Origin: Octopus bimaculoides
Taxonomy: Eukaryota
Length of the DNA stretch: 46,455 nt
NCBI RefSeq assembly: GCF_001194135.2
Contig: NC_068982.1
Coordinates: 134,534,191 to 134,580,645 of the forward strand
Direction: 5' to 3'
Part shown: positions 2,898 to 46,455 of the stretch, piece after piece
Numbering within the stretch: position 1 is the first letter of the stretch
Layout: each line of letters opens with the position of its first letter
Translations under genes and position numbers: made by a program
Notes under the pieces: model-generated
Database searches by the model: none
Told to the model about the DNA's origin: nothing
Seen by the model: only the letters and a program-made list of their open reading frames with translations

Positions 2898-5800
2898 CTG
2901 AAATATCACAAGAAAAGAATTTTAAGAAATTAATTAACAAGTAAAAGAATTTAACTTCAATAAAATCAAACCTAACAGAAAGTTTGAACAAATTATCTGA
3001 TAGAACCTATTTGCCTTCATCTCTATCTGTCTGGTCCAGTCTGATTTGTCCATCTATTTATCTGATAGAACCTATTTGCCTTCATCTCTATCTGTCTGGT
3101 CCAGTCTGATTTGTCCATCTATTTATCTGATAGAACCTATTTGCCTTCATCTCTGTCTGTCTGGTCCAGTCTGATTTGTCCATCTATTTATCTGATAGAA
3201 CCTATTTGCCTTCATCTCTGTCTGTCTGGTCCAGTCTGATTTGTCCATCTATTTATCTGATAGAACCTATTTGCCTTCATCTCTGTCTGTCTGGTCCAGT
3301 CTGATTTGTCCATCTATTTATCTGATAGAACCTATTTGCCTTCATCTCAGTCTGGTCCAGTCTGATTTTTCCAGCTATTTATTCATCTGTTCTCATTGTC
3401 TGCCCATTCCTGTGAGAGGAGTAGGGGAATCCCCAGATAAGCATATACACTGGTTCTATTTCACTTCAATATTATATATTTGTCAATTGTTTAGATATTT
3501 AACCAATTAGCTAATCAATTGTTCAATCAATCAATCAATCAATCAGTTAAGTTTGTCAGAGTAATCTTTATAGCCATTCCCAACCTTATCAATGACATTG
3601 CCCCCTCTAAGAAAAATTACAACTTCTCAAAACATCTAGCACTGCTCCATTGTACCCCCTTGTGAACTCACAACATCCCTGAGGTGTATGTGTGGGTGTT
3701 ACTGACAAAGTGAAGAACCACAGCCCTAGATTTTGAAATGTCACAATTAACCCCAGTTGGATTAGAACTCAGAGTGTAGAAAAGAAAAAACAGAAATTTA
3801 AATGCTGATATCACTCTATCATTCAGTTATGCAGGTGGATACCAGAACTGGTATTTGCCACATTTAGTTATGTCTCTTTACACAGTTCAAATCCCACCTG
3901 GATTCCTTGTAGTCTTTCATTGGTGCAGCCTCCTGGCTTACCAGTCCTCAGTCAAATCATCCAACCCATGCCAGCATGGAAAGTGGATGTTAAATGACAA
4001 TGATGATTCTTCTAAAGTTGATAAAATAAGTTGATGGCATTCCGTCGAGGGTTCCAGTTGATCCGATCAACGGAACAGCCTGCTCATGAAATTAACGTGC
4101 AAGTGGCTGAGCACTCCACAGACACGTGTACCATTAACGTAGTTCTCGGGGATATTCAGCATGACACGGTGTGACAAGGCTGGCCCTTTGAATTCCAGGC
4201 ACAACAGAAACAGGAAGTAAGAGTGAGAGAAAGTTGTGGTGAAAGAGTACAGCAGGGTTCACCACCATCCCCTGCCGGAGCCTCGTGGAGCTTTAGGTGT
4301 TTTTGTTCAATAAACACTCACAACGCCCGGTCTAGGAATCGAAACCGCGATCCTATGACTGCAAGTCCGCTGCCCTAACCACTGGGCCATTGCACCTCTA
4401 CTGATAAAATAAGTAACAGCCCAAGTAAATATGAATTGGGATTAATGTAATCAACAATAGTCTATAACAATGGTTCCAACCTTTCCATCACTACCAATGA
4501 CCCCTTTTGCTTAAATGGATTTTCCCACGGACTCCAGACCATGGAAAGTCTGTTTACTCGATCAACCAATTTTATTAGCTCACAACAAACTCGTTTTCCC
4601 GGTTTCATCTCTCAAATGAAAGACATATATAATTAAAATAATTATATGTAACTAGGTAATTGCACATTTTATGCTGCAGACTTTTAAAACAAAACTTATG
4701 AATGCATGGAACTATTTTTGTGGGTTCCTTGAGGTCTGTGGATCCCAAGTTGGGAAACACTGGTCTGTGCTCCAGCATGGCAACAATCCAATGATTGAAA
4801 CCAGTAAAATAATAAAACAACAGGCATGAAGTATGGAAATTAGGGGGAGGCAGGAGCTTACAGTGTAATATTTGTACTCTTCCTGTAAATAATATATAAA
4901 TGGAGAGCTCATCAGAATTTAACAACAACAGCAGCAGCCGCCACCACCAGGCATGCTTTTGTGGTGGGCTGCAAATCAAGAAGCCATTGTTTATTAGCCA
5001 GAGGCCATAAGAGAAATGCAAACTCACTCACACAAACACACACAGATATATGAAAAGCTTCTTTCGGGTTCGACCTACCAATTCTGTTCACAAGCCTTTG
5101 TTTGATCAGCCTGGAGCCATAATAGAAGACACTTGCTCAATGTGTAACACAGTGGGACTGAACCCAAAACCATGTGGTTGGGAAGTGAGCTTCTTAACCA
5201 CATCATCATCATCATCATTGTTTAACATCTACTTTCCATGCTGGCATGGGTTGGACGGTTTGACTGAGGACTGGCGAGCCAGGAGGCTGCACCAGGCTCC
5301 AGTCTGTTCAGGCAAGGTTTCTACAGCTGGATGCACTTCCTAATGCCAACCACTCCCAGAGTGTAATGGGTGCTTTTTACATGCCACCAGCACAGGGGCC
5401 AATCAGGCGACACTGACATTGACCACACTCGAATGGTGCTTTTTATGTGCCACCGGCACAGGAGCCAGTCAGGCAGCACTGGCTTTGCCCCACAACTATA
5501 AAAAAAGAAAACATTTAAATAAACCTACCTTTTGCTGTAGTTCTTTTTTCTCTATTTCAGTTTTGTCCAAACTTCTCCGTACTTTTTCGATGGCTTCATC
5601 TAAATCATCACGCTCCTTAGACAGTTTCTGCAGCTGCTCTTCAATCTCTGATACAGTTTTTTGTAATGCTGAAGAAGTGAACATTTCAATGCATTTCAGA
5701 AAAATTGTATTAATCTAATATGAGTTAATTAAAAATTGCTAGTTTATTAAGAACAGAATCAATCTTTATAAGGAAAATATGATAAGCCATCACTGCTAGC

Positions 5801-11742: not shown

Positions 11743-14700
11743 AGATAGTATCAAGCATGCTGAAACCAATAGCTGTACACAGTTATTCCATTTGGTAGGG
11801 TCAACTTAAGTTTCTAGAAAAATCTGAACTGATCATCTTTATAATATATTTGTCAGGGAGCCATGGTTATCTCAGGTGAAAAGGATATCTTCTCTGCTCT
11901 CTGCTCTCTCTCTCTCCCTCTCTCATTTCACTTATCCTATTCCTGTGCATTTGCTAACTCGATGCTCTCTGGTTATCAATGATGGCCTTTACAAGAGCAA
12001 CAACACACTTATAAATAAGAATTTGTTAAACTTGATCTGAAGCTAATATGATACAACAGCAAGTAGATCAGAAGCAGAAAAGAAGATTGATCTTACTTTT
12101 GACTTTGTTCATTATAGTTTTCCTTCAATACCGTGTGTTCCTCTGCCATCAATGCCAGTCTGAAATCGAAACGATAAAGAAGGACAATTTTCTTTAATAT
12201 TCTTTACATACTTGTATGGTAGGAATCATATTTTATTTAGAAGACAAGTTGAAATTTAGTATAACAAAATACGTTTGTGGTGCAATGAAGCTGCAATAAC
12301 AAAACACATTTTAGTTTTTAATTGTTTCAGTCATTGAACAGTGGCCATGCTGTGGCACCAGCTTGTAGGGTTTAGTCAAAGAAATTGACCCAAGTACTTA
12401 TTTTTAAGTTTGGGATTTATTCTGACAGTCTCTTATGCCAAACCACAAAATTGTGCCCATGACTTTTGCAGGCCATCCTAAACCTGTAATAAGAAAAGAT
12501 GAGTTGGAACAAAGACTGCAGATATTGGAGAAAAGGAGAAAGAAAAAGAAAAGAACCATCTAGATTTACTTCTGGTTTTTGGCTTTTTAGAAAAGATTAG
12601 AGAAAGGTGGTGTATTGAAAAGTCATGACAACCCCTGCTGGAGGCCTAAACCAATTACTTGCAGAGAAAATTCCACTGAAGACAGCTAAATGCCAAGTGG
12701 ATTATGACTGCATTATATCAGAAGAGTAAAATGGGTTTGAAAGAAGTTTGTCAGCAGAGAAGTCGTGTGTTGTAACTTTAGAAGAGCTGCTAACCATTCC
12801 TTTTGCAAAGAAAAGTAAAATGAAATACACACACCAAGATGAAAGTAAATGTTATATATTGTACTTAATAAAACAAGGCAAAACAAACATGGAGTTTCCA
12901 AAAAGTAGAACCAGAAAAAGAAAGAACATCTCACTTCTGTTTTTCAGCCAGTAAATTGTTATAATTTGTCTCAAGAGCAGTCATATTCTGTAGCTTTTCT
13001 TGATATTCTTCTGTTCTCTTTTCAAAAGTACGGAGCATATTACGGATGCTACAGTTCTGAAGATAAAATTTCAAAAGAATAAAGAGAATTAATCTAATAA
13101 AAACCAATGAGACTTCAAGTATAAATACTAAATAAATTTCGAGTGTTGTGTTGTCACCAGATGTTATCAAAAAGGTTTAATCAACCCCTATTCTTAACTT
13201 ACATTTTTTTTATTATTGAAAACACAGAAGAATAATTGACGAAAAGAAATACAATACTTGACTAAAATACTTATTTTACTGACCCAAGAGAAACAAAAGG
13301 CAAAAACCGGCCTTAGTGGGATTTGAACTCAGAAGAAAGTGATACAACTAGACACTTCTAGGCATGTTGCCTTCTGCTATTTAACAGATTCTGATAATCC
13401 ATCACAGTTTATAATTAGTCTTGTGTTTACAGCTGATATAACAACACCTTCATGGGTGGAAGTTTGAAACCATAACAGATGAAACATATTTGAAGTGGTC
13501 TTCTTACAACCATAAACTAAACCACGTCAGTGATAATTCTATGAAGATTTCACCAGTAGAAACTTACCTCTGCTTCTGCTTCTGCACGACGAGACCTGAA
13601 TTGACTTATGACACGATCAGCACGGACCACTGCTAATGTCTTAGCTTCCAAAAGGTCTTGTAGCTGTTGTTCTCTCATCTAAGGACAGAAACAAAGTATT
13701 CAATATTTACATTATTTTCACTGCTTATTAAAGAAGATGCCTTCTTTCTGGTGCTTGTTTTTTTCTTAAAGAAATCTAATTAAAACAATCATCATCATCA
13801 GCATCATCATTTAACGTCCGCTTTCCATGCTAGCATGGGTTGGACGATTTGACTGAGGACTGGTGAACTGGATGGCTACACCAGACTCCAATCTGATCTG
13901 GCAGAGTTTCTACAGCTGGATGCCCTTCCTAACGCCAACCACTCCGAGAGTGTAGTGGGTGCCAGTCAGGCGGTTCTGGCAATGGCCATGCTGGAATGGT
14001 GTTTTTTTATGTGCCACCTGCACAGGAGCGAGACTGCTGCTCTGGCAGTGATCCCGCTCGGATGGTGCTGTTAGTGCTCCACTGGCACGGGTGCCAGTCA
14101 ATAGTCATACCAATCCTTTCTATTATAGGCAAAAAGCCTGAAATTTTGAGGGAGGGGGGGGCTAGTCGATTACATTGACCCTTGTGTTCAACTTGTACTT
14201 ATTTTATCAACACCAAAAGGAGAAAGGCAAAGTTGACTGTGGCAGAATTAAATCTAATTAAATGTCATTAAACATTTTGTCTAGCATGACACCGATTCTG
14301 CCAGCTCACCATCTTGACAACAGTCGTAATAATAATTGTTTCTTACACACAAAACCCGATATTTAGGGAAGGCAGTGTTAAATGATTAAATCAACTCCAG
14401 CACTTGACCGTTACTTTATTTTATTGACCCTGGAAAGACAGAAGGCAAAGATGACCTCAAGAAGATTTCAGCAGAACACATAAAAGCATTGCAACTACAT
14501 AGTGTATAGCTTTACAGTGACATTGAATTTGGAATCACATGGTCGTGAAGTAAATTTTCTAACCACACAGACTGGGTGCTTTCCTGTACCCTAACAACAA
14601 TCTCATAATTCATCATCATCGTCATCATCATTTAATGTCTGTCTTCCATGCTGGTAGGGGTTGGATGGTTTGACAGGAGCTGATAAGTGGCACCAGGCTC

Positions 14701-29700: not shown

Positions 29701-32700
29701 GACCCCGAANNNNNNNNNNNNNNNNNNNNNNNNNNNNNNNNNNNNNNNNNNNNNNNNNNNNNNNNNNNNNNNNNNNNNNNNNNNNNNNNNNNNNNNNNNN
29801 NNNNNNNNNNNNNNNNNNNNNNNNNNNNNNNNNNNNNNNNNNNNNNNNNNNNNNNNNNNNNNNNNNNNNNNNNNNNNNNNNNNNNNNNNNNNNNNNNNNN
29901 NNNNNNNNNNNNNNNNNNNNNNNNNNNNNNNNNNNNNNNNNNNNNNNNNNNNNNNNNNNNNNNNNNNNNNNNNNNNNNNNNNNNNNNNNNNNNNNNNNNN
30001 NNNNNNNNNNNNNNNNNGCGGTGGCGGTGGAGACGGTGGTGGTGGTACAAACAATGTTGTTTATTTGCAACCTTCAATGAAAACCTTCCTGGCTATTGTG
30101 CTGTTCATGTTTGAAGGACTGAGAAATATTACCTTGACTGGAAACAGGTGAGAGAGCACCTGGCCATAGAAAATCTGCCTTGACAAATTTCATCTGACCA
30201 TCTATGCAAGCATGGAAAAAAAAAACATGAAAACACTGATGATGACAATGTTTATGATGATTATTAGAAGGAGGTTGAAGACCACGGGAATTCAGGATTG
30301 TTTGAGGAAACTTTTATAGGCTAGTAGCTTGGTTACCATTATAGAAAGAGTTCTAAATCTGGGGAAATGGTCTGTAGTCCAAGTATTAACATTGCAAAGG
30401 TCAACATGCTAATTTAGATCAGAAGTCCTAGTGCCATTGAGGAAGTGGTTTTGTTCAGTATGTAGGAAGGAAGGTGGAACTTGACTCTATCTATTCACAA
30501 CTAAACAACGAATAAACAAATAAGATTTCTGGCAAACTGACAGAAAAGTAAGAGTTTAGATATATCAGAGGAGTAGCTAGCATTATAATCACTGTTGAAA
30601 TGAAATCTCAGACAGCTGTCTCATTAGATGTAGCTGTTAAGTTTTTTGTTGATGTTGACAGTAAATGCTTTCCCTGTGAGGGAAAAGTTGTTCTGTATGA
30701 AGCATAAGTAAAACTTGTGACATGGAGCCATGAACTTTAAATAAAGAAAATCTATGAAGGATGGAGAGAAATGAGTCAAGCGTGATTCAGTGGATGCTAA
30801 CTTGTATGAGAAGCTGACAGATCATCATCGTCGTTGTTTAATGTCTGCTTTCCATGCTGGCATGGGTTGGACGGTTTGACTGAGGACTAGTAAACCAGAA
30901 GGCTGTACCAGGCTGTTTCTACAGCTGGATGCCCTTCCTAATACCAACCACGCTGAGAGTGTAGTGGGTGCTTTTTACATGTCACTGGCATGAGGGCCAG
31001 CAGGCGGTACTTGCATTGACCTTGCTTGAATGGTGCTTTTCATGTACCACCATCATGGGAGCCAGTCAAGTGGCACTGGCAGCAACCACGCTTGGATGGT
31101 GCTTTTTACATGCCACTGGCATGGAACCAATCAGGCAGCACTGGCATCGACCACACTTGAATGGTGTTTTGTACCTGACACTGGCACAGGTGCTAGTCAG
31201 GCTGTACTGGCATCAGCCACAACAATGACTTCACTTGACTCAACAGGTCTTCGCAAGCACAGTTTATTGCCCAATGATTGAAGGGTTCTCTTAAATGGGC
31301 CAGTTATGCTCCACTGGCATAGGCCACAGTTACGGTTTCATTTGGCTTGTGGGGTTTTCTCAAGCACAACATATCTCCAAAGTCTCAGTCACTTGTCATC
31401 GCCTCCTTGAGGCCCAACGTTCGAAGGTCATGCTGGAGCCTGGTGCAGCCTCTCAGCTTACCAGCCATGGTCAAACTGTCCCAACCCATGCCAGCATGGA
31501 GAATGGATTCTAAATGATGACGATGATGATGTAATTTTCATAGTAGAATTGACAAGAAATTCAGAAATTTGAACCTTTAACCACTCAGTTCTCTCCTCAG
31601 TTACACAGTCTATAATTGTATTCTATTGCCAGGCCATCATTTTGCTTTTAAATGTAGAGCTCTTCCATCAGTCAATGTTGACCATGCACATGAATGTATA
31701 GGCTTGAGCAAGACTTTCCAGAACAACTAGTCATTGTTCATGCATGCAAGTCTCTTCTTTCAATATCATTAAAGTTTATCCAAGAGAAAAGTTCAATGAC
31801 TTGGACTGGCACAGCTTGACACCAATCTTATCCCAGACATAGCTGTTGGAATACAAAGATCCAGAATAGATACCAAATTCCTGATTTTCTAACAGTTCCA
31901 TTGCCTTGGATTGGTAGTTTTTCCTTTTTCTTCTTTCCAACTTCAAAAGAAGGGAAAAACAAAGCTGATTTCAGTGGGATTTAAACTCAGAGTGAAAAGG
32001 TTCATATCAAATATGACGTATTCTATTCAACACTAACAGTTCTGCCAAATTTTCCACCTTTGTTTATAAATACAGATGATCAATGTAAGCATAAAGATAA
32101 AACATGTTTCATCGAGTCAAAGAAGTGAGGGAAAACATTTGTAGAACTATTCATGATTACTTCCATTGTGAGAAAAAAATGGGGGAAACCCCCCCAAATC
32201 AAATGAAGTTTAAAAGAAGGAACTTTTGATTGAACTGAGGTTTTAAAACCCCAGATTTGAGTAGCTGGTAAATCCTAAAAGGTAACAAATCTATGTAAAA
32301 ATAAGACTACTTTCAAAAAATTGCTTTATAGAGTTTTCCGTACACATTTCACATAAGCATTAAGGAAAATTAATTTAGGGATGAAATAAGCTTATTTTTA
32401 AAATTCTTTTGCTATCAAACAACCTGAGACTGTCCCTAGTTCTATGATACAAACCCTGTGTTTAAAAGTGATCTAAATGAAAACCAGCCATCAAAATTTC
32501 AGGCTCCTTTATGTTTCAAACACCTTAACTCTGGCAGTTATTCTACTAAATTCTTTATTATTTTGAAAATTAACTGAAATGACAGCAGTTTATTTCAACA
32601 TAACTATAGTAACAAAAGGATTAATCTTGTCAGAGAAGTTATATATAAAATTGAAGAGGGCAAAATCAAAGTTTACTCAGAAGCAGAGAGAGATTTACAA

Positions 32701-32829: not shown

Positions 32830-32960
32830 GGCTAATGCATAACAACTCCTTTTACCTGCATGACATTTTCAAAGAAGGATTTTACTGTAGGCACATTAAT
32901 GAACGACAAGAAATTCAATACACACAACACCAATGATACACTGAGGTCACTGTGGAATAG

Positions 32961-33017
<57 letters not shown>

Positions 33018-35757
33018 TAAATTGCGAAATTAAACATCCACACCCACATATGTGTAAACGATGACAAATTCTAAACGAGATGAAAAAACAATCTATTAAA
33101 CATACAAGAGGAGTTGACAGATGGAAGAAGCAAATTCATTTGATGAACTCACCCCCAGTTCTGACGTTTGGCATCTTTTCTGGTGTGATTCATAGAGAAG
33201 TTGGTGTTGTTGAAGTGAAACTCTAACAGCTGGTGGAAATCTTCAACTTGCAAATAGGATAACATTTTTTCAACAAACATGCTTTCTTGGCAGATATGTT
33301 GAACCTGTTAAGGCTGGTTAGAACAACTTAGGATTCAAAAACAACATGCATTACAAATGTATATACATTTTAATGACAAATAAACAAATTTCATGAATAC
33401 ATAGTGAGTGAGAATTTCAGTGAAGAATATTTTATTCGTAACTTAAGTAAACATGTGGAAATAATGGAATAGCAGAATAGGGAAGTTGATCAAGAACTGA
33501 AAAATTGTTATAACCAGTCTAGTGGTGGTCAGTTTGTGGGGCTGCTAGAGAATTGGATAAAATACATTACAATATTTGTTGTGCTCTGAAATCAAATCCT
33601 GTTATAGTCAATTGTGCTTTTTATCATTTCAGAGTTGATTCAGAAAGTACCAGCTCAGTTCTGGCACAACCATTTCTCCAGCCAGCCATCGCATCTTGGA
33701 CGTTGTGCTAGTTCAAGAGTGTGAGGGCTGTGAAAGGCGTTACATCTGTTATCATTATCATTTAACATCCGATTTCCATGCTGGCAAGCTGGAGAACTAT
33801 GCCAAGCTCTATTGTCTGTTTTGGCATGGTTTCTATGGCTGGATGCCCTTCCTAGTGCCAACTGCTTTACAAAGTGTACTGGGTGCATTTTTTGTGACAC
33901 TAGTACTAGTAGGGGTCACCAAGTACCTTGTGAGACAGAACAAAGTCCCTTTGAAAGCATGGTATGCGCTATACCAAGCCATCCTTGATTCCAAGTGATG
34001 GCTGTAGTGTTTGTTAGCTTAGCTTACACAATCCATGCATGGCAAAATATACCAGTCCATCTCAGATAACATTCTTCTATGATCTGATATCTCTACTAGA
34101 GCTTGGCAAACAGAAATCCGTAGAACTAAATGTTTACTATCCAAATACACAATAAAATACCTGTAGTGTGTCTGAACTCAAAACCCTTTCTACTAGCTTG
34201 TGATACTGCTTCAAATGAAACTGTTATGGTGTGAAGCACAGCCAGTGAAATCTCATCACAACACTGCTATTTCATGATACTCTATCTATCCAGTAAAATA
34301 TTTTTGCTTGCATCTTATTTGTTTATCTATTGACATCTGTATTGTTTATGCTCGCATAGGTTAGGCATATTACTTAGGCACTCACTGTTTTACAGTCAGA
34401 CGTCCATCCACTTGATAATCCCAAACTGGTTTTCAAAGGATTTTTCATTCTATTTGTCTTTGAAAGTGCAGAGCTACAGGATCATTTTGTTATGGAATGT
34501 AAACAAACATCACTGTTTTTAACTTTTGTGTGGAGCAAGAAATGTAGCATTCACATACATACGAGTTTGATTACATTTGTGTGTCTGCAAAAATCACTCA
34601 GCTATGTGTGGTAACATTGCTGTCTTTTCCCCTATCAATGAGTCATCTGTTGGCTTTGCGTCTTCAAAGGCATGTAGAATAAGATATTCCTTACTAGAAA
34701 AACAGGTAGGGGTTAGTGACAGTAAGAGCATTCAGCTGTAAAACAATGCCTCAATAATATATTCATTTAACCCATGCTAGCACAGAAAAAAACAAACGTA
34801 AAAGCAAACAAAACAATATATACACACCAGGCTTCCATATAGTTTCCAGCTATAAATTCCACTCAAAGCATTGCTCATCCCAAGGCTACTGTAGAAGACC
34901 CTTTTCCAAGGAGGCATGCAATGAGATGGAACTCAAAAACCAAATGGTAACAAAATAAAGTGTCTATCTACACAGCCATACCTGGTGAGTTGGACAAAAA
35001 ACAGATTTGTCAGATTGACATGTTTGGCTGATTAAATCAATCCCAGTTTAATATTACTGACATCGGTTTTATTGATCACTGTTGACACAATGACATGATG
35101 AACTGAGTTGCTGAAAGTAGTCAGTTGTACCTGTACAAAGTAGTTCTTTAGAGCTAACGAGGTTAAATACCATTAACACCAAAATGTCTTTGTTGAGGAA
35201 TAATATACAGTACCAGTGACAAACTGTTTTATTGTCTATGGATTATTTTCAAAAGAAATTATTTTTTACCATTTAGTCAGAAGGGAATGAAGGATGAAAG
35301 TACGAGCAAACCAGATGTCTGGCCCAAATGCTTGCATTGAAGTGGATTCCACTATATATAAAAAAAAAACAAACTACAGGCCTAGGTAGTGGTGGTAAAC
35401 TTAGCAACAATTTAAGTCTACCATCCAAGTAGGCTTTGGTGGCCAATCGGATACTCTAAAGATTGCTTTAGTCCACTGATCTAGACTGGTATTTTGTCAC
35501 ACCTGACCAATATCATGAGTGAATTTGATAGACAGAACGTGTAGAAGCCTATTCTCTCTCTGGCAGTTGTGGTGATTTGCTGCACTTGAAAAGACGTACA
35601 TTATTTACATTATTTAAATTAGACAGATATGTGTCCTCATCTTGTTTGTTGTTACCACAACATTTCAACTGATTTTCTCTCCAGCCTTCATCAGGTGTCC
35701 TTGTGGAATTTTTAAACCCAACTCTGGGTTCTCATTCCTAAGATATATTTTTGCAGA

Positions 35758-35791
<34 letters not shown>

Positions 35792-38700
35792 TACTCAAGG
35801 GTTGGGTTCAAAATTCTATCAGGCCACCTGATGAAGGCTGGAGAGTAAATCAGCCGAAATATTGTGGTAACATCAAACAAAATGAGGACACATATCCGTC
35901 CAATTTAAATGATGTACAGAATTCCTCATCTCTGAAATATAGAACAGTTAAAAAGATGTGTCAAGCTAAGTAAAACCACTGTTCTCCATTCAGGTGCCGG
36001 TGCCACATAAAGTGCACCCATGCCGGAGCTGCATAAATGCATCCATTCTGGTGGCACATAAAAAGTACCCAGTACAGTCTGCAAAATGGTTGGCATCAGG
36101 AAGGGCATCCAGCCATAAAAACCATGTCACAACAGACAACTGGAGTCTGGCCAACTCCATTTTCAGACCAGAAATGCATAGCGGTATTTCGTATGTCTTT
36201 ACGTTCTGAGTTCAAATTCCGCTGAGGTTGACTTTGCCTTTCATCCTTTTGGGGGTCGATAAATTAAGTACCAGTTGCGTACTGGGGTCGATCTAATCGA
36301 CTGGCCCCCTCTCCCAAAACTTCAAGCCTTGTGATTAGAGTAGAAAAGAATACAGTGGAAATGAGGTACCAAGTCAACAATGACAATGTACTACATTACT
36401 AGATGACTGTATACAATTCAGCTGGCTTAGTTTAGATTGAATAAGTGATATCATATTTTCTTCATCCAACTGTAAAATACTTGCTTCAGTATCCTTCATC
36501 ATTTGTAAAAGTCGTCATCTGTGCCAGTGGAGCGCTAACAGCACCGTCCGAGCATGGTCATTGCCAGAGCAGCTGTCTGGCTTCCGTGCCAGTGGCATGT
36601 AAATAGCACCATTTGAGTGGGATCGTCACCAGTGTCGTCTTACTGGCACTTGTGCTGGTAGCTCGTGAAAAAACATTCAAGCGAGGTCGTTGTCAATGCC
36701 ACTGGACTGACTCTTGTGCAGGTGGCACGTAAAAAACACCATTTTGAGCGTGACCATTGCCAGTACCGCCTGACTGGCACGTAAAAGCACCCACTACACT
36801 CTCGGAGTGGTTGATGTTAAGAAGGGCATCCAGCTGTAGAAATTCTGCCAGATCAGATTGGACCCTGGTGCAGCCATCTGGTTTGCCAGTCCTCAGTCAA
36901 ATCGTCCAACCCATGCTAGCATGGAAAGCGGACGTTAAACGATGATGATGATGATGATACAATGCATGTTGGCAGAGGTGGATCAACAGTATCATTACAA
37001 CATTGGAGAAAAGGTCTTGTAATATTTGTTTTGTGTTCAAATCCTACCATGGTCAATGTTGCTCTTCATCTTTTTGAGGTTGATAAAATAAAGCATCAGT
37101 CAAGTATTGGAGTAGATTCAATCAACTAAAGCTATTACTGCCAATCTCTGGCCATTTGCTATGTTAGAAATTATAATTATTATTATTAAGGTGGCAAGCT
37201 GGTAGAATCGTTAGGTGAAATGCTTGGCGGTATTTCGCCTGTCACTACGTTCTGAGTTCAAATTCTGCTGGGGTCAACTTTGCCTTTCATCCTTTCAGGG
37301 TCGATTAAATAAGTACCAGTTATGCACTGGGGTTGATGTAATTGACTTAATCCTTTCCCCCAAATATGAGGCCTTGTGCATCCAATAGAAAGGATTATTA
37401 TTAAGGTAGTGAGCTGGCAGAGTTGTTAGCAAGCTGGGTGAAATGCTCAGCGGTTTATTCGTCTGTCGCTACATTCTGGGTTCAAATTCTGCCAATATTG
37501 ACTTTGCCTTTTGTCCTTAATAAATTAATAATTTAAATACCAGTGAAACATTGGATTTGATGTAATTGACTAGTCCCCTCCCCACAAATTTCAGGTTTTG
37601 TGCTTTTAGTAGAGAGGATTATTACCTCCACCTTAGCGAAGACAGAGGTATTGTTTTCAGCTGTGTTTATTTGTTTGTCCATGGACAAGATATCTCAAGA
37701 ACTGCTGGATGAATTCGGATGAAACTTTCAGGGATGTTTGGCCTCGTGACTGCCACAAACTGATTAGATTTTGGGATCGATCTGGTACTGGGCAAGGATT
37801 CAGGATTATTTTTCAGGCTTTTAAAAAATTTTTGAGAGCGGTCAGGTTCATTTTGAGTATTCCCGTTTGAGAGCAGTCGAGTTTATTGCATTGAGAGGAC
37901 GTTGGTGTTGCCTTGATGGAGGTTTGTGGTCTCTGAGCGCTCTTGTTATTATTTTCAGAGTCAATTTCGTCTATCATCCATTTAGTTAAAATACTAGTGC
38001 TTTAGTAGGGATCAACCTAATTGACTATACCTTCTTCCCCATTATTTCATACTTTTATATTAATTCCCTATAATCTGCAGAACTGATCACCTGCCATAGC
38101 TATACACATAAGCATTATCTCCACTATCATAATCACTTTTATATTCAATTCTACCCAACTCTAACCCAAAGTAACACAGTTATTTTTACTCGTCTTTGTA
38201 CTCAAATCAATTCCTCAGTGAATCAGATGCAAGTACGAAGATTCGAAGAAAGTAAATTAAGAAAACATATCAGCAGAGTTATTGCCCTTGAACACTGAGG
38301 TTTGTACTTTGCAATAAGAATCTTACGAAAACCTTTTATTCCTTGGTGGATACTTCGAAGTATTCCTCGCTTTAGCAGGTATATTTACTTCTGAGAAATA
38401 TAAATACTAAAGCTTTTTCTTCATATCTACGTTGGTTATTGACTGCATTATTTGTCATCAGGTCAGAACTTGGCAGGATTTGAAATCAGTAGATTTCAAA
38501 CAAACTGTAAAAGAAAGTATTTAATCTAATAACTGTGTACCATTTCTACTAAGTTACCAACCTATTATCGTCATCTAAATATTCATTATCCCAAAAGAAC
38601 ACATCAAAGCACTTTTAAAGTCTCATTTTTCTCAGGATCTTACATGCTATTCATCATCATATTACGTCCGCATGTATAGGAGAGGTTGTCACGGTCGGAG

Positions 38701-41700
38701 TTAGTTCTTATTCAGAGTTATTGCCCTTGCAAAATCAGTTCTCGCGTGTACGTTTCATTAGTTGAGGGATGTTTAATTATAGGCAATTAAAAGGGGATCA
38801 TGAGTTCAAATTCACAGCAACTCTGTACAGGGCACAACATTCTGTGTCCCACAGGTTGTCTGGCAGTTAAAAAATAGGACAGGTGCTATGAGAAAAGTTT
38901 CTTGCCGGAAACAGGTATCCATCCATGGGAAGATGTCTTTCATTTATTTAGTTACAACTAAATTGAGAGATCATGCAGGACATAGATATCCTTCAGCTAC
39001 ATCATCGTTTAACGCCCGCTTTCCATGCTGGCATGGGTTGGACGATATGACTGAGGACTGACGAACCAGGCTCCAATCTATCTGGCAGAGTTTCTACAGC
39101 TGGATGCCCTTCCTAATGCCAACCACTCCGAGAGTGTAGTGGGTACTTTTACGTGCCACCAGCACGAGGGCCAGTCAGGCGGTACTGGCAACGGCCACAC
39201 TCAAATAATGTTTTTTATGTGCCACCTGCACAGGAATCAGTCCAGTGGCACTGGCAACGACCTTGCTTGAATGTTTTGTTCACGTTCCACCGGCACAAGT
39301 GCCAGTAGGGCGACGCTGGTAATGATCACGCTCAAATGGTGCTATTTACGTGCAACCGGCACAGAAGCCAGACAGCTGCTCTGGCAGTGATCCCACTCGG
39401 ATGGTGCTGTTAGTGCTCCACTGGCACGGATGCCATTAAAGGATTATCAATTGTTTTTTAATGTTATATACAAGGCATGGGTATGTGGTTAAAAAGTTTG
39501 CTTCCCAACCACATAGTTTTGGGTTCAATTTCACTGCATAGCACCTTCAGCAAGTGTCTTTTACTATAGTTAACAAAAGTCGTGCATACGGAATTGGTAG
39601 ATGGAAACTGTGTAGAAGCCTATTATGCGTGATGTGAAGGGTATGCATGCTTGTGTCTCCTTGTCTTGATGTCACATGGTAGCTGTAAATGAGTGTCATT
39701 GTCACTGATTTCCAATATTCTGTAGAAACGTGTTTGGCTATGGAGAAATAATAACTTGCTGGGAAATAGGTGAGGATCGATGACAATAGGGGCATCAGGC
39801 CATAGAAAATCTGCCTCAATAAACTCCGTCTGATCCATGCAAGCATGGAAAAATGGCCGTTAAAATTATAAGGATGCTGTTACCATTAGGATAACATAAT
39901 GGAGAGGATGTAAAAATCCAGTCAGTCTTTTAGAGCCTGCTTTTTTAGTTATACTAAGAATTAAATTATTTCTGAGTCAATGTTTCACCCTTTTTGATGA
40001 CAATTTGAATTGGCCAGCATCCCTTCTTAAATCTTTCACGTTGATATAAAAAAGAAGATGAAATTTAATTTTGAATTCCCAGCACTTTTCAAATGAATTT
40101 CTATCATCCTTGGTTGGGAAACATTGCTCCAAGAGGTTGAGGGGCTATCTTTCGATTTGATGTGAAGAGACGTCAGGTAAAAGCACATGGGTTTTGTTTA
40201 CATCTAATCGGCTAACCCTAACAGGTCGATTAGATGTAAACAAAACCCCATGTGCTTTTACTGTGGACTAACCATCAGACAAGTGGTGTTGTTCACTTCA
40301 TAATCTTCTGTGGGAACATGTCCAGCCATGGCGAAAATTATCTTGTTTGGAAGTGGGTTTGGGACAGCAAAAAGGGCATCCGGCCATAGAAAATCTGCAT
40401 CAATGAATTCCATCTGACCCATACTAACATGGAAAAGGTGAACGTTAAAACAATGATGATGAGGAGAAGGAAGAGGATGATGATGATGATGATGATGAAC
40501 ATACACAAAGGAGGAACCATGAACAGAGCATGGGTCGTTTATGAAAAACATACATGTGAATAACAAGTTGATTTAAATATTCCAATATTAGCATCAAAAG
40601 GATATTACAAAGTGCTTTAATAACGAGGATTTGTTTTTGGCAGAAAGTTTTCATGGCTGTTGGGTGAGAGACTGGTGGAGAAGCCTTTAGACTTTTGTGC
40701 AAAACAGTTAGAAGAGATTCTACAGATTTTTCTTGGTCTTTAAGCCAACTGTTTTCATTCAATTCCTAAAGAAAAAAACAGGATAGAAACCGTTCAATAG
40801 TTGTCATGTAAGGAAAAGGAATGAATATTCTTTAACCAAAAAGGGATTCTAGCTTGTCTGTTGGCAGTCTCATGATGATATTGTTAACCCATAAAACGCT
40901 AGGATTTGCACTTACATAGCATGGACTGCTGAGCACATTTTATGAAAAAGAGACTACCAACGCACACATAAAAAACAAAAAATAGTTAAAATATCTTCTT
41001 AGTATATAATGGTGGCAAGTTTTACATCATCTGAAAAGTCATTAATTGAACTATTACTCCTCTTGCATTCTGGGGGTATTGAAGCGTTTGAGTGACATTA
41101 GACCCTAACAAATGCCCATAAATTAAATGCATCTATTTGGGCCACGATCGTGGCCTGNNNNNNNNNNNNNNNNNNNNNNNNNNNNAATACTTGTATTTCA
41201 TTCTGAGAGAGGTGGTGAAAGTACCACAATAATTCAGCCTACAACATTCTTTCTGTCATTGGTATTTTACTAATCACGATTCTTTTAATCCAACAGGTAA
41301 GAATTTGTAATCAATACTCAATGCTAATGAAATGTTTGTTAGTTACACAGTAATATAATTTTGAACAGATTTTTTTCTCTTATTTTCAAATACAATGTAA
41401 TATAATTTTTTTAAGAATCTGGAATTTTGACAGAGAAAATAAAAAGATTTATGGAAGTAAAAGATTTTAGTTATAAACAGTATGAAATAGGACACAAGAA
41501 AATGGTTTAGATTTGTAAAATAGATAAAAAGAAAATGACAAGCAATATTTTATGTAAAGATGGTATTGAGACATTTAGTAATGTTGTTTAAGCAGTAATG
41601 AAAAAGTTTGATGAACCTCAAAATGGAAATAATAATGATAGTCATGACAATGATGATGATGATTATGATGGTATGGGACAGTGAATTATTGAGTATGTCA

Positions 41701-44700: not shown

Positions 44701-45538
44701 TGTTTTTCCTGTGGCCATCTACTGGGCAGATGACCACTAGAGAGAAACATTAACCACATTGATATCACAGAGGTGTCAGAGGATGTGCAAAGGCCATGGG
44801 CATGGCCTCTTCCACCAGATCAAAAAAGCCAAAAAAAGTTTTAACTAATTTCACACATCCAAAAGATTATGCTTACTTTTCTCTCTGGCCAATATAAGTT
44901 TTATGTCGAGAAATATTAAAACATATAAATGTATGTGTGCATGACTACTTACTTACAAAAGTTTACACATACATACAGACACAAAATTACACAATGCAAA
45001 GGTAAAGATTGTTTGCCAACATAACATGGCAGTTCTGGTTTAGGACTAATGTTGCTGTAATTTAGCCCCAAGAGACATCGTCTCCAGCTGGCTATACAAC
45101 ATGATCTGTGTCCTTACATTTTCGAACAAAGGAATCTAGCACCCCTTGTTCGAAAATATAAGGACATAGATCATGTCATATAGCCAGCTGGAGATGATGT
45201 CTCCTGGGGCTAAATCACAGCAACATTCGTCCTAAACCAGGACTGCCATGTTATGTTGGCAAAAATCTTTACTCCAAAGTACTGTTGCTGAAAATCTCTT
45301 GTTGTGAGATTTAAAAATAGTAATTTTGTACAGTCTATAACTATAACAGTCAGACAAAATGAAAATGTAAGTATTTCAATAATAGTAATAATAATAAAAG
45401 TGACTGGTAACTTACTTTATTGCCTAATTCCTCTTGAAGACACAAACTGGTGAGTATGGAGAGTGAGAAGATTATCATGCTCAAGTTATTATGAGACAGA
45501 AACGGGATCAAAGTCAGCTTCAGCTTGCGAGATACTTC
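2736..45538 (-). CDS. CIP2A: CIP2A (KIAA1524, cancerous inhibitor of PP2A) orthologue; 17 coding exons in window, 5' end outside window
   Basis: The exons join in frame (2127 nt). Peptides are collinear with recalled human CIP2A: LFNANNINQTFKMMFNIVING ~ [30 protein letters not shown] ~ LGESIAANN; QLQDLLEAKTLAVVRADRVI ~ [33 protein letters not shown] ~ KHSHMIAMIHSLS. Confidence 0.95.
2994..3383. repeat. 65-bp minisatellite, ~5.8 near-identical copies, in the last CIP2A intron
   Basis: tagaacc recurs at 3001, 3066, 3131, 3196, 3261 and 3326. Confidence 0.97.
4032..4401 (-). mobile_element. tRNA-derived SINE, full length, 13-bp target-site duplication
   Basis: Head gtagaggtgcaatggcccagtggttagggcagcggac...ggtttcgattcc (A and B boxes); TSD tgataaaataagt at 4019-4031 and 4402-4414. 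Confidence 0.88.
5529..5668 (-). CDS. CIP2A: CIP2A exon (140 nt, phase 1/0)
   Basis: cttcttcag|CATTAC...CAAAAG|gtaggt; LQKTVSEIEEQLQKLSKERDDLDEAIEKVRRSLDKTEIEKKELQQK. Confidence 0.92.
5991..6303 (-). mobile_element. Second copy of the same tRNA-derived SINE family; head lost in a gap
   Basis: Near-identical to 4032-4330. Confidence 0.88.
6571..6632 (-). CDS. CIP2A: CIP2A exon (62 nt, phase 2/1)
   Basis: cattttacag|GAGTCTT...GTTAAAT|gtaagt; SLEKQGKLSRQLKESESMVK; bridges phase 2 to phase 1. Confidence 0.82.
8912..9025 (-). CDS. CIP2A: CIP2A exon (114 nt, phase 2/2)
   Basis: gtgcaatag|GTTAGAG...GAAGT|gtaagt; LENAEHMLNTLRQEHTSLTEMHEILRKHHETLKQQNE. Confidence 0.9.
9236..9463. mobile_element. 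TTAA-flanked MITE, same family as 28692-28920
   Basis: ttaactcttttggtgc ... ggtaacaaaagggttaa. Confidence 0.6.
9549..9912 (-). mobile_element. tRNA-head SINE with conserved central domain and gaaacaagtaaaa tail, slightly 5'-truncated
   Basis: Reverse complement of the 42143-42513 element. Confidence 0.85.
9940..10062 (+). pseudogene. Decayed RTE ORF2 C-terminal fragment
   Basis: MDEDSCMKKC*ALIVEGTSGRGKPRKTWDEVVRKNLRM, homologous to 590-720. Confidence 0.8.
11673..11738. repeat. (GA)n microsatellite
   Basis: Directly visible. Confidence 0.95.
12097..12159 (-). CDS. CIP2A: CIP2A exon (63 nt, phase 2/2)
   Basis: gatttcag|ACTGGC...CAAAA|gtaaga; LALMAEEHTVLKENYNEQSQ (~human LESVAEEHEILTKSY). 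Confidence 0.88.
12935..13056 (-). CDS. CIP2A: CIP2A exon (122 nt, phase 0/2), coiled coil
   Basis: tatcttcag|AACTGT...CAGAA|gtgaga; NCSIRNMLRTFEKRTEEYQEKLQNMTALETNYNNLLAEKQ. Confidence 0.88.
13568..13678 (-). CDS. CIP2A: CIP2A exon (111 nt, phase 0/0)
   Basis: gtccttag|ATGAGA...GCAGAG|gtaagt; MREQQLQDLLEAKTLAVVRADRVISQFRSRRAEAEAE. Confidence 0.94.
13790..14100 (-). mobile_element. RTE 3'-end-derived element with (CAT)n tail. Similar copies at ~5200-5490, 7060-7170, 18600-18900, 20142-20400, 21285-21530, 22530-22850, 25537-25671, 27890-28330, 33745-33900, 36520-36958, 39000-39435 and 45565-45790
   Basis: Shared catcatttaacgtccgctttccatgctagcatgggttggacg...ctacagctggatgcccttcctaacgccaaccac motif, matching the LINE 3'UTR at 1231-1441. 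Confidence 0.88.
14746..15035. mobile_element. piggyBac-like MITE (TIR CCCATAAAGTGC, TTAA duplication) nested in an RTE-tail element
   Basis: ttaa|cacataaagtgc ... gcactttatggg|ttaa; the host repeat resumes on both sides; inverted second copy at 40884-41157. Confidence 0.8.
15237..15299 (-). CDS. CIP2A: CIP2A exon (63 nt, phase 0/0)
   Basis: tttttccag|GTAAAA...ATGCAG|gtaaga; VKDVKLSEMIDVYEHKLQSMQ. Confidence 0.92.
15683..15893 (-). CDS. CIP2A: CIP2A exon (211 nt, phase 2/0)
   Basis: ttattttag|GTTGGGT...TTAGAG|gttggt; [14 protein letters not shown]...SIEDLIEKLQTGLE; the weak donor was chosen because it fits the phase of the next exon. Confidence 0.88.
16266..16433 (+). mobile_element. Putative 5' LTR of a Ty3/Gypsy element
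   Basis: Bounded by TGTTG...CAACA; internal tataaa; immediately precedes gag-like sequence. Confidence 0.65.
16435..17282 (+). pseudogene. Degenerate Ty3/Gypsy (K02A2.6/Mag-like) gag with zinc knuckle
   Basis: SIANSIGEFIYNPEEGTTFSAYFRRY; FKCLIFVQEL...KLTLQAVAEECQRIINLRHD; CX2CX4HX4C knuckle CFECEKIGHKSLHC at 17205-17246; stops and frameshifts between the segments. Confidence 0.85.
20590..21028 (+). mobile_element. tRNA-head SINE with central domain and RTE-like (ATG)n tail; similar copy at 39471-39866
   Basis: Head ggcacaggtgtggctgtgg...caccttgggcaag...ggaaactgaaagaagcc, then agaaaaatcttcc...aagtggatgataaatgatgatg. Confidence 0.75.
23667..24043 (-). mobile_element. Two tandem SINE monomers of the ggcggcgagctggcagaa family
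   Basis: Each contains aaaggcaaagtyracct...gaatttgaactcagaac...ttctgccarct; homologous to 37188-37622. Confidence 0.8.
24102..24432 (-). mobile_element. tRNA-head SINE (42143-42513 family)
   Basis: Reverse-complement homology across head, central domain and tail. Confidence 0.8.
27643..27761 (-). CDS. CIP2A: CIP2A exon (119 nt, phase 0/2)
   Basis: gctttcag|AATTCC...GTCGC|gtatgt; NSNIVQFLSKGFLSSDRNEVHAAINLLSIGSKLESFPHV. Confidence 0.9.
28692..28920. mobile_element. TTAA-flanked MITE (TIR cccttttgttac)
   Basis: ttaa|cccttttgttac ... gtaacgaaaagg|ttaa; relatives at 9236-9463 and ~32400-32624. Confidence 0.7.
32856..32949 (-). CDS. CIP2A: CIP2A exon (94 nt, phase 2/0)
   Basis: attccacag|TGACCTC...ATGCAG|gtaaaa; DLSVSLVLCVLNFLSFINVPTVKSFFENVMQ. 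Confidence 0.87.
32961..33014. repeat. A54 homopolymer (U54 in the CIP2A pre-mRNA), next to a splice acceptor
   Basis: Directly visible. Confidence 0.95.
33153..33297 (-). CDS. CIP2A: CIP2A exon (145 nt, phase 1/2)
   Basis: ggttcaac|ATATCTGCC...TGGGG|gtgagt; ICQESMFVEKMLSYLQVEDFHQLLEFHFNNTNFSMNHTRKDAKRQNW. Confidence 0.88.
35596..35917. mobile_element. Inverted pair of Penelope-like pseudo-LTRs around a (TTA)n spacer
   Basis: Arms ~35607-35729 and 35793-35917 are reverse complements; each carries ctgatgaaggctg...gaaa. Confidence 0.75.
35823..35868 (+). ncRNA. Minimal type I hammerhead ribozyme motif
   Basis: Stem I GCCAC/GTGGT; core CTGATGA(+A); stem II GGCTG/CAGCC; GAAA; palindromic ATAT stem III; predicted cleavage after 35863. 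Confidence 0.7.
37188..37622 (+). mobile_element. Two tandem SINE copies (ggcggcgagctggcagaa family) with (TTA)n tails. Others at ~5790-5950, 10227-10425, 14115-14315, 29235-29447 and 36170-36351
   Basis: Two repeats of aaggtrgyragctggyaga...gttcaaattctgc...actttgcctt...aggattatta. Confidence 0.85.
37621..37948 (+). mobile_element. Helentron-associated (HINE/DINE-1-like) non-autonomous element, tentative
   Basis: Starts attacctccaccttagcgaagacagagg, followed by a gtttgt tract; ends ccttgatggaggtttgtggtctctgagcgctcttgtt (subterminal inverted repeat to the 5' end). Confidence 0.5.
40177..40261. repeat. Near-perfect 34/35-bp inverted repeat with a 16-nt loop
   Basis: gtaaaagcacatgggttttgtttacatctaatcg / cgattagatgtaaacaaaaccccatgtgcttttac. 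Confidence 0.95.
40606..40765 (-). CDS. CIP2A: CIP2A exon (160 nt, phase 0/1), followed by the U12 AT-AC intron
   Basis: ttctttag|GAATTG...CTTTGTA|atatcctttt; ELNENSWLKDQEKSVESLLTVLHK...KQILVIKALC. Confidence 0.88.
40884..41157. mobile_element. Second copy of the CCCATAAA TTAA-MITE, running into a gap
   Basis: Reverse complement of ~14775-15035; begins ttaa|cccataaa. Confidence 0.8.
41747..41962 (-). CDS. CIP2A: CIP2A exon (216 nt, phase 0/0)
   Basis: cttttcag|GTGTTT...TTGGAG|gtattt; VFELFISFCSVRSIRKML...ASCRALELCIEILE. Confidence 0.92.
42143..42513 (+). mobile_element. Full-length tRNA-derived SINE
   Basis: A box tggctgtgtgg, B box ggttcagtcc, central ccttgggcaagtgtcttctactatagcc...gacggaaactgaaagaagcc, tail gactgaaacaagtaaaa. 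Confidence 0.88.
42669..42744 (-). CDS. CIP2A: CIP2A exon (76 nt, phase 2/0)
   Basis: tttttacatcag|GTTTACT...ACAAAG|gtatgc; FTHLSASLKEVFVLLGSCSALTATK; bridges the flanking phases. Confidence 0.85.
44177..44322 (-). CDS. CIP2A: CIP2A exon (146 nt, phase 0/2)
   Basis: ttgtcag|CTGTTC...GCAGT|gtaagt; LFNANNINQTFKMMFNIVINGESGTSRLYAIDLFIDMMKNSKIQQLLA. Confidence 0.93.
45002..45272. repeat. Fold-back element, ~128-bp arms with a 16-nt loop (MITE-like)
   Basis: 45002-45129 is the imperfect reverse complement of 45146-45272. Confidence 0.9.
45416..45538 (-). CDS. CIP2A: CIP2A exon (first in window, 123 nt, phase 0/0)
   Basis: ttgtag|GAAGTA...AATAAA|gtaagt; EVSRKLKLTLIPFLSHNNLSMIIFSLSILTSLCLQEELGNK. 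Confidence 0.9.
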
Positions 45539-46172
45539 CTACAAGTAAAATAGAAATATTCATTATCATCATCATTGTTTAAGGTCTGCCTTCCATGCTG
45601 GTATGGGTGGGGTGGTTTGACAGGGGCCAGCCAGGCAGAAGCCTGCACTAGACTTCTGTGACTGTTTTGGCAGGATTTTTACAGCTGGATGCCCTTTCCA
45701 GCAGAGTGGTCTTAGTGCTCTTTACATGGCACAAGCACAGGTGAGGTTAGTTTTGGCAAGGTTTTTACAGCTGGATGCCCTTGCATACATAAATACACAT
45801 ATGGAGAGGATGTGTGTGCATAAGGTCAAACAGAATTTGTTGAAGCAGATTTTCTACAGCCAGATACCCTTCCTGTCACTAACCCTCACCTGCTTCCAAG
45901 CAAGGTTAAATTTCTCCATGGCCAAACAAGTTTTTCAGGAAAGACTGGAAACAAACAACCTCACCTGTATGATGATTATGCGTATGTGTGTATGTAAGAA
46001 TGTGTAAGTGTGCATATAGGGGGTAGTGATCTTGATATGTGTGCATGTGTAAGTGTGGGTGTGTGGATGATGGCGTGTGGGTGCTGAGACGTGGTCATAA
46101 ATGCCTGCACAGAGCTTCCAGGACAGTCTGCTTCAACATGTAAAACTGGGGGTAACAGTCAATCCCTATCTA

Positions 46173-46455
46173 TCTATATATATAAAAATGAGAATGTGTG
46201 TCTGTCTGTCTGTGTGTGTGTGTGTGTGTGAATCCCTAAAACTCAAGAACTACGCAACCAATTTCATTCAAATTTTACAGATGCCTTACTTAGGGTTCCA
46301 GTTGTGTTTTAGTCAAAAAAATTTTTTTACTTCTTGCAGAGTTCGAGTCCAAGGCAACATAATATCTCCTCCACTATTTAAGTATTATGTGTCAAAAGTG
46401 AAACAAAAACACTCATGTCAAATACTTTCACTTTAAAAATGAAACTATTCCACTA
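46173..46455 (+). mobile_element. 5' end of a Helitron-like non-autonomous element
   Basis: a|TCtatatatataaaaatgagaatgtgtgtctgtctgtc...ccaatttcattcaaatttt, typical of Helitron 5' termini; 3' end outside the window. Confidence 0.5.

Follow-up and report, generated by a model that had tools for sequence, protein, structure and literature searches.

A probable minor-spliceosome AT-AC intron in the CIP2A gene of Octopus bimaculoides, and its orthologs in other animals

The CIP2A locus

The stretch of DNA analyzed here (46,455 nucleotides of contig NC_068982.1 of Octopus bimaculoides; hereafter, the window) contains the CIP2A gene of this species on its minus strand, with the 5' part of the gene lying outside the window. 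The RefSeq protein XP_052821582.1 ("protein CIP2A [Octopus bimaculoides]", P0184 in our set) matches the window with zero mismatches across 17 exons, and the exact reconstruction of the junctions gives 16 introns, of which 15 have GT-AG termini. The remaining one, the fifth intron of the window, has AT-AC termini, and is equivalent to intron 10 of the complete gene, as numbered in Argonauta and the mouse. This intron is the subject of the present study.

The earlier note on this DNA, made from the letters alone, had recognized a cephalopod CIP2A here, and this was borne out, residue for residue, by the RefSeq protein. The concatenated candidate exons match the sequence of the human CIP2A crystal structure (PDB 5UFL; E=1.6e-10), with the junction of the AT-AC intron aligned to human ...EVLLT/LCGDD..., while a second database search with a longer exon concatenation retrieved the O. 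bimaculoides CIP2A itself. The Pfam domain CIP2A_N (PF21044) was found on homologues of the window protein, which, together with the 5UFL match and the identity to XP_052821582.1, identifies the gene by homology to a protein composed of a CIP2A_N armadillo domain and a C-terminal coiled coil. A translated search (tblastn) with human CIP2A as the query placed residues ~192-905 on the minus strand of the window. The query was found afterwards to be 99% identical to the macaque/human cluster P0001, and no conclusion depends on it alone. The joined peptide of 102 amino acids (aa) that surrounds the junction found no match in a word-indexed protein search when used alone, and its PDB and Pfam searches were non-significant, because this region is too divergent by itself, and the longer exon concatenation was required.

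The same 102-aa peptide stands exactly within both P0184 and the UniProt protein of O. bimaculoides (P0121), yet the word-indexed search missed both, so a null result from that search is not equivalent to absence. The public CIP2A models of this species are 5'-incomplete, at 688 and 718 aa, compared with the 898-901 aa of the O. sinensis and Argonauta proteins, and P0121 has an odd N-terminus, MEKFNLAWKQEVSRKLKL. The region concerned is that of positions 45416-46455 and beyond, with the first ~190 codons of CIP2A falling past the end of the window.

Splice signals and the exon junction

The upstream coding exon (40606..40765, minus strand; 160 nt) is preceded by an acceptor reading ...TTTCTTTAG, starts in phase 0, and ends with the first base of an Asn codon. 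It encodes ELNENSWLKDQ...QILVIKALC(N), which is exactly residues 168-221 of P0184. Directly after the 3' end of this exon, which reads ...GCACTTTGTA, comes ATATCCTTTTGA (40605..40594, minus strand). The U12-type 5' splice site ATATCCTTTT occupies 40596..40605 of the minus strand, with the AT terminus at 40605..40604, and the nine bases that lie directly at the exon end (ATATCCTTT, 40605..40597) agree with RTATCCTTT at all nine positions, with the same sequence being found in O. vulgaris and Argonauta. This motif and the branch-site motif TTCCTTRAY are the published consensus of the minor introns (PMC8848931).

The intron itself (33298..40605, minus strand) is 7308 nt long and lies in phase 1. 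Near its 3' end is the branch-point sequence AGCCTTAAC (33307..33315, minus strand), in which CCTTAAC (33313..33307) forms the core. The branch A is probably position 33308, at a distance of 10 nt from the 3' junction, and 9 nt separate the end of CCTTAAC from the end of the intron. This interval, AGGTTCAAC, is not rich in pyrimidines, and a polypyrimidine tract is lacking before 33298. The intron has a branch box of the TTCCTTRAY type, with a perfect CCTTAAC core, at the distance of some 10-20 nt from the 3' end that is typical of the tract-less U12-type 3' site. The intron ends in ...CAGGTTCAAC, with the terminal AC at 33298..33299 (minus strand), and the 3' boundary reads ...CTAACCAGCCTTAACAGGTTCAAC|ATATCTGCCAAG on this strand.

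The downstream coding exon (33153..33297, minus strand; 145 nt) opens with AT ATC TGC CAA..., encodes (N)ICQESMFVEKML...RQNWG in exact agreement with P0184, and is followed by a GTGAGT donor. When joined, the two exons form an open frame, ...KALC-N-ICQESMFVEK..., in which the Asn codon is split A|AT. The earlier note had described the intron by its coordinates, its exact 5' site, CCTTAAC, the 9 nt to the intron end, the terminal AC, and the in-frame join, and each of these elements was recovered unchanged. The motif ATATC flanks the junction on both sides, which allows six placements of the intron (shifts 0 to +5) that produce an identical messenger RNA (mRNA). Among these six, AT-AC termini are found only at shift 0, and GT-AG or GC-AG termini at none.

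The transcript strand of the window contains a single copy of CCTTAAC, and the joint probability of finding, by chance, the 9-mer exactly at the exon end and CCTTAAC correctly spaced from a terminal AC is approximately 4e-10 per intron. The use of the junction in mRNA is suggested by proteins that are continuous across it in O. bimaculoides (RefSeq and UniProt), O. sinensis (XP_029658139.1), and Argonauta hians (reading KALCNICQES, KTLYNICQGS, or KTLHNICQET). Transcript contigs from Logan that belong to another cephalopod (L003; 3.2 kb, with an open reading frame that equals P0123 exactly) are also continuous, and free of gaps, at the junction column.

A second perfect copy of ATATCCTTT, at 11880..11888 on the minus strand, was considered as a further minor intron and rejected. 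It is located 215 nt inside GT-AG intron 13, after a non-coding stretch that is rich in (GA)n and has stops in every frame. The 29-mer of this copy is also missing from the O. vulgaris locus, and the copy is most likely due to chance or derived from a repeat.

The orthologous intron in other animals

The orthologous CIP2A loci of other animals were compared at the genomic level, and the intron was reconstructed at column 442 of the protein alignment (A1). An intron in this column, in phase 1, with ATATCCTTT, a branch site resembling TTCCTTRAY, and a terminal AC, was found in the mouse, the sea urchin Strongylocentrotus purpuratus, the hemichordate Ptychodera flava, Argonauta, O. vulgaris, and the sea anemone Actinostola sp. 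In each of the fully mapped genes in which the column-442 intron is AT-AC, including mouse Cip2a, no other intron is AT-AC or U12-like.

Among the cephalopods, the intron of O. vulgaris (L010) has a length of 9387 nt and the same signals as that of O. bimaculoides, with which it is collinear at 87-90% identity, and that of Argonauta hians (L002) has only 649 nt, running from ATATCCTTTTTC to TTCCTTAAACAATTCCAC. The mouse copy (L005; intron 10) is 1202 nt long, from ATATCCTTTACC to TATCTTAACCAAATGTAAC, and those of S. purpuratus (L007) and P. flava (L008) measure 1690 and 497 nt, respectively. In Actinostola (L006), the intron was located by hand at 5038..5493 (456 nt; ATATCCTTTTAA...TTTCTTTAACCATTTGTAC). 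All of these are AT-AC introns in phase 1. As the alignment position and phase of the vertebrate U12 intron are shared by the octopus, mouse, sea urchin, hemichordate, and cnidarian introns, they are orthologs, in agreement with the suggestion of the earlier note that this is an ancient intron, equivalent to that found at human VLLT/LCGDD. The presence of the AT-AC intron in both a cnidarian and bilaterians indicates, therefore, that it is at least as old as their common ancestor.

The earlier note had also called for the examination of the intron type in vertebrates and other mollusks, and the answer is divided, with AT-AC termini in the mouse, O. vulgaris, and Argonauta, but GT-AG termini in two bivalves. 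The introns of Mytilus edulis (L004:16971-17178; 208 nt) and Solemya velum (L009:24824-25964; 1141 nt) share the column and phase 1 with the octopus intron, but differ from it in having GT-AG termini, U2-type donors (GTACGTATAA and GTAAAAATTT), and a pyrimidine tract. This pattern is typical of a conversion from U12-type to U2-type, and implies that one took place, either in the bivalve lineage or twice independently. An AT-AC intron in phase 1 was thus present in the cnidarian-bilaterian ancestor, and was kept in the vertebrates, echinoderms, hemichordates, and cephalopods, but in two or more bivalves it became a GT-AG intron of the U2-type. Both the deep conservation of minor introns and their conversion from U12- to U2-type are established phenomena.

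In the naked mole-rat (L001:14506-16758, JH166332.1), the orthologous intron begins with ATATCCTTTACT, and the mammalian product VLLTLCGDD demands that it end in ...TTTCTTAACAAAACTTAT, which would give AT-AT termini in this assembly. This could be either a real variant or a base error.

Relationship to known minor introns

The class, gene, and position of this intron are already known, and the octopus junction is already present in the RefSeq and UniProt models. The minor intron of mouse Cip2a, taken from U12DB, possesses a donor that matches the consensus perfectly, and is retained upon the loss of SMN, in the spinal cord of a spinal muscular atrophy model (PMC8848931). It has also been described as a phase 1 intron that is retained upon the ablation of U11 in the testis, where the level of the CIP2A protein falls (PMC12956336). 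Given that intron 10 is the sole AT-AC intron of mouse Cip2a, the minor intron of these studies can only be intron 10, the ortholog of the octopus intron. A pan-eukaryotic survey based on intronIC, covering more than 3000 genomes and including Octopus sinensis, found the mollusks to be relatively rich in minor introns (PMC10639083). A search of the literature found no paper that pairs KIAA1524, the other name of CIP2A, with the U12-type, or minor introns with the cephalopods.

The octopus intron resembles the U12DB-listed intron 10 of mouse and human CIP2A in the gene, the column (T426 in the mouse, VLL-T-LCGDD in humans), phase 1, the AT-AC termini, ATATCCTTT, and a TCTTAAC or CCTTAAC branch box located 10-12 nt from the 3' end. 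By contrast, the mouse copy has 1.2 kb, compared with 7.3 kb in the octopus, and it splits a Thr codon (A|CN), whereas the octopus intron splits an Asn codon (A|AT). Another difference from the copies of the mouse and humans is that at least 46% of the octopus intron is interspersed repeat, and dependence on U12 is established for the mouse copy. All the features that define the U12-type AT-AC class at the level of the sequence (/RTATCCTTT ... TTCCTTRAY-N(~10-15)-AC) are present in the octopus intron, which is atypical of this class only in its length, being longer than the sampled orthologs.

Repeats and the expansion of the intron

Sequences that make up one-third of the intron recur at other places in the window (nine blocks), and at least 46% of the intron is composed of dispersed repeats when the comparison includes both the window and the O. 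vulgaris locus, after the masking of the orthologous intron in the latter. In this comparison, 11 blocks were found, with up to 42 copies. The value of 46% is a lower bound, derived from approximately 100 kb of Octopus DNA, and refers to unclassified blocks that are not proven to be separate insertions. The largest cluster of interspersed repeats in the intron lies at 36519..37952 (blocks 36519-36969 and 37028-37952), and includes the sequences with up to 42 copies. Further blocks are found at 38982..39872 (38982-39435, 39473-39636, and 39708-39872), and the remaining ones are located at 33745-33909, 34818-34938, 35597-35931, 35991-36157, 36164-36365, and 40269-40462. Rfam and tRNA scans of the window returned no matches, and thus detected neither a non-coding RNA hosted by the intron nor the tRNA-derived head of a short interspersed element (SINE).

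The O. bimaculoides intron is collinear with that of O. vulgaris, apart from several lineage-specific insertions or deletions (indels) of 0.4-2.9 kb, which indicates that most of the growth of the intron is older than the split between these two species. Between Argonauta and Octopus, nothing can be aligned apart from the signals, and the ancestral core of the intron cannot, therefore, be delimited from this pair. In Octopus, the intron has expanded from a sub-kilobase length (that of Argonauta has 649 nt) to 7.3-9.4 kb, for the most part through the insertion of interspersed repeats, with its signals intact. The earlier note had estimated at least ten insertions of transposable elements. Expansion by repeats is broadly confirmed by the 11 blocks and their share of the intron, and a number of this order is plausible, but what is seen are blocks, rather than counted or classified insertions.

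Splicing of the intron and alternative explanations

Very probably, the interval 40605..33298 is a U12-dependent AT-AC intron of CIP2A in O. bimaculoides, its intron 10, which would be removed by the minor spliceosome, as no GT-AG or GC-AG pair reproduces the conserved protein. Its signals fit the published U12-type consensus (PMC8848931), as the earlier note had claimed, in the only intron among the 16 that is not GT-AG. Certain observations weigh on the other side, however. The RTATCCTTT motif has two matches in the window, compared with 1.08 expected, and the 9-mer alone is thus at chance frequency, while the branch sequence agrees with the consensus at seven of nine positions, with AG in place of TT upstream of CCTTAAC. 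The support for the junction comes from annotated proteins and the transcripts of a different cephalopod, rather than from O. bimaculoides reads, and spliced reads alone are unable to discriminate the six equivalent placements, which are indistinguishable in the mRNA.

The chance frequency of the 9-mer would also be expected if the motifs at the two ends were coincidental, and the intron were of the U2-type, spliced at nearby GT-AG or GC-AG sites. Within ~100 nt of the boundaries, 42 such pairs are in frame and free of stops, and the pair named in the earlier note, GT at 40608 and AG at 33305, is outside this set, as had been claimed. Each of the 42 would, however, add or remove 1-54 codons in relation to the proteins of Octopus, Argonauta, and the other cephalopod, which align without gaps at this point, and would depend on poor donors, such as GCACTTTG and GTTATTAA, with no polypyrimidine tract before 33298. 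As the AT-AC signals also recur at the same codon in seven other species, coincidence is extremely unlikely. The type of spliceosome is not defined by AT-AC termini alone, and a rare class of U2-type AT-AC introns, with U1-like 5' sites (similar to ATAAGT) and no TCCTTAAC box, is processed by the major spliceosome. The octopus intron shares its termini with this class, but differs in having a 5' box, ATATCCTT, as well as a branch box, TCCTTAAC, with ATATCCTTT at one end and CCTTAAC 10 nt from the other, and the mouse ortholog responds to the loss of U11 (PMC12956336), which leaves very little probability for removal by the major spliceosome.

It is equally improbable that the two exons are not truly adjacent, and that the AT-AC pairing is an artifact of an assembly mis-join or of an unrecognized exon within the 7.3 kb. 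The window does contain seven N gaps (at 17283-18154, 29710-30017, and 41158-41185, for example), and the intron is rich in repeats, but none of the gaps lies within 33298..40605, and the chromosome-level assembly of O. vulgaris is collinear over the whole intron, with 87-90% identity and the same boundaries. The protein alignments, in addition, account for all residues.

If the intron is spliced by the minor spliceosome in the octopus, as in the mouse, the U11/U12 small nuclear ribonucleoprotein complex (di-snRNP) would recognize both ends jointly, with U11 pairing with the rigid 5' site /AUAUCCUUU and U12 with the branch sequence CCUUAAC. The U4atac/U6atac.U5 complex would join next, with U6atac displacing U11 at the 5' site, after which the branch A, some 10 nt upstream from the 3' end, would attack, and the exons would be ligated across the A|AT of the Asn codon. 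The retention of the intron would lead to a first in-frame stop at 40445..40447 (minus strand; TGA/TAA-class), 52 codons after the Asn, which would truncate CIP2A at approximately residue 430. The protein would thereby lose its entire coiled coil, as well as the C-terminal portion of its armadillo domain. By analogy with the mouse, the premature stop suggests that the output of CIP2A should track the activity of the minor spliceosome. The intron may also have a rate-limiting role in the octopus, and its regulatory use in these animals is a matter of speculation.

A broader proposal is that the intron has kept its AT-AC identity over more than 600 million years because this ties the output of CIP2A to minor-spliceosome activity, as a throttle linked to proliferation or mitosis, with the bivalves that have GT-AG introns having lost this control. 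We consider this unlikely. If it were true, the repeat-bloated copy of 7-9 kb in Octopus would be a natural test of the limit to which a recognizable U12 intron can expand.

Implications for gene annotation

The value of this intron lies mainly in the quality of annotation, for which it offers a convenient check on pipelines that ignore AT-AC introns. It adds little new biology, as CIP2A is a catalogued minor-intron gene, but it does provide a clear and dated case of one minor intron, kept since the cnidarian-bilaterian ancestor, converted in bivalves, and expanded more than tenfold by repeats in Octopus.

The prediction of the earlier note that pipelines restricted to GT-AG introns may mis-model or split the gene at this point held for part of the deposited models, those of O. 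vulgaris, Actinostola, and the naked mole-rat, but not for those of O. bimaculoides, O. sinensis, and Argonauta, which carry the junction. In the O. vulgaris annotation (OX597815.1; L010:428-667 and L010:10001), the AT-AC intron is precisely the point at which CIP2A is split. The upstream model ends at L010:667, which is the first read-through stop past ATATCC, and the first ATG of the following exon (MFVEK...) serves as the start of the downstream model (CAI9718163.1). In Actinostola (L006:4870-5493, JAUJYZ010000513.1), the deposited model skips the upstream exon, which encodes ...ILKTRCARISKSLDVLS, and the deposited protein of the naked mole-rat is mis-modeled at the intron, with VLLNILYYDTLK instead of VLLTLCGDDTLK.

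A third, short model of O. vulgaris (CAI9718165.1; 162 aa) spans the N-terminus of CIP2A. In the window, the intron that adjoins the downstream exon (intron 6; 32950-33152, minus strand) is only 203 nt long, with an unbroken run of ~55 T forming its 3' part, unlike the tract-less 3' site of the AT-AC intron. Two of the CIP2A introns of Mytilus edulis (L004:13771-14435 and L004:26472-27181) contain tandem arrays with periods of ~62 nt and ~92 nt, in 11 and eight copies, respectively. The units of these arrays hold copies of the ends of the neighboring exons (residues 233-247 and 854-875), and resemble satellites derived from exon edges.

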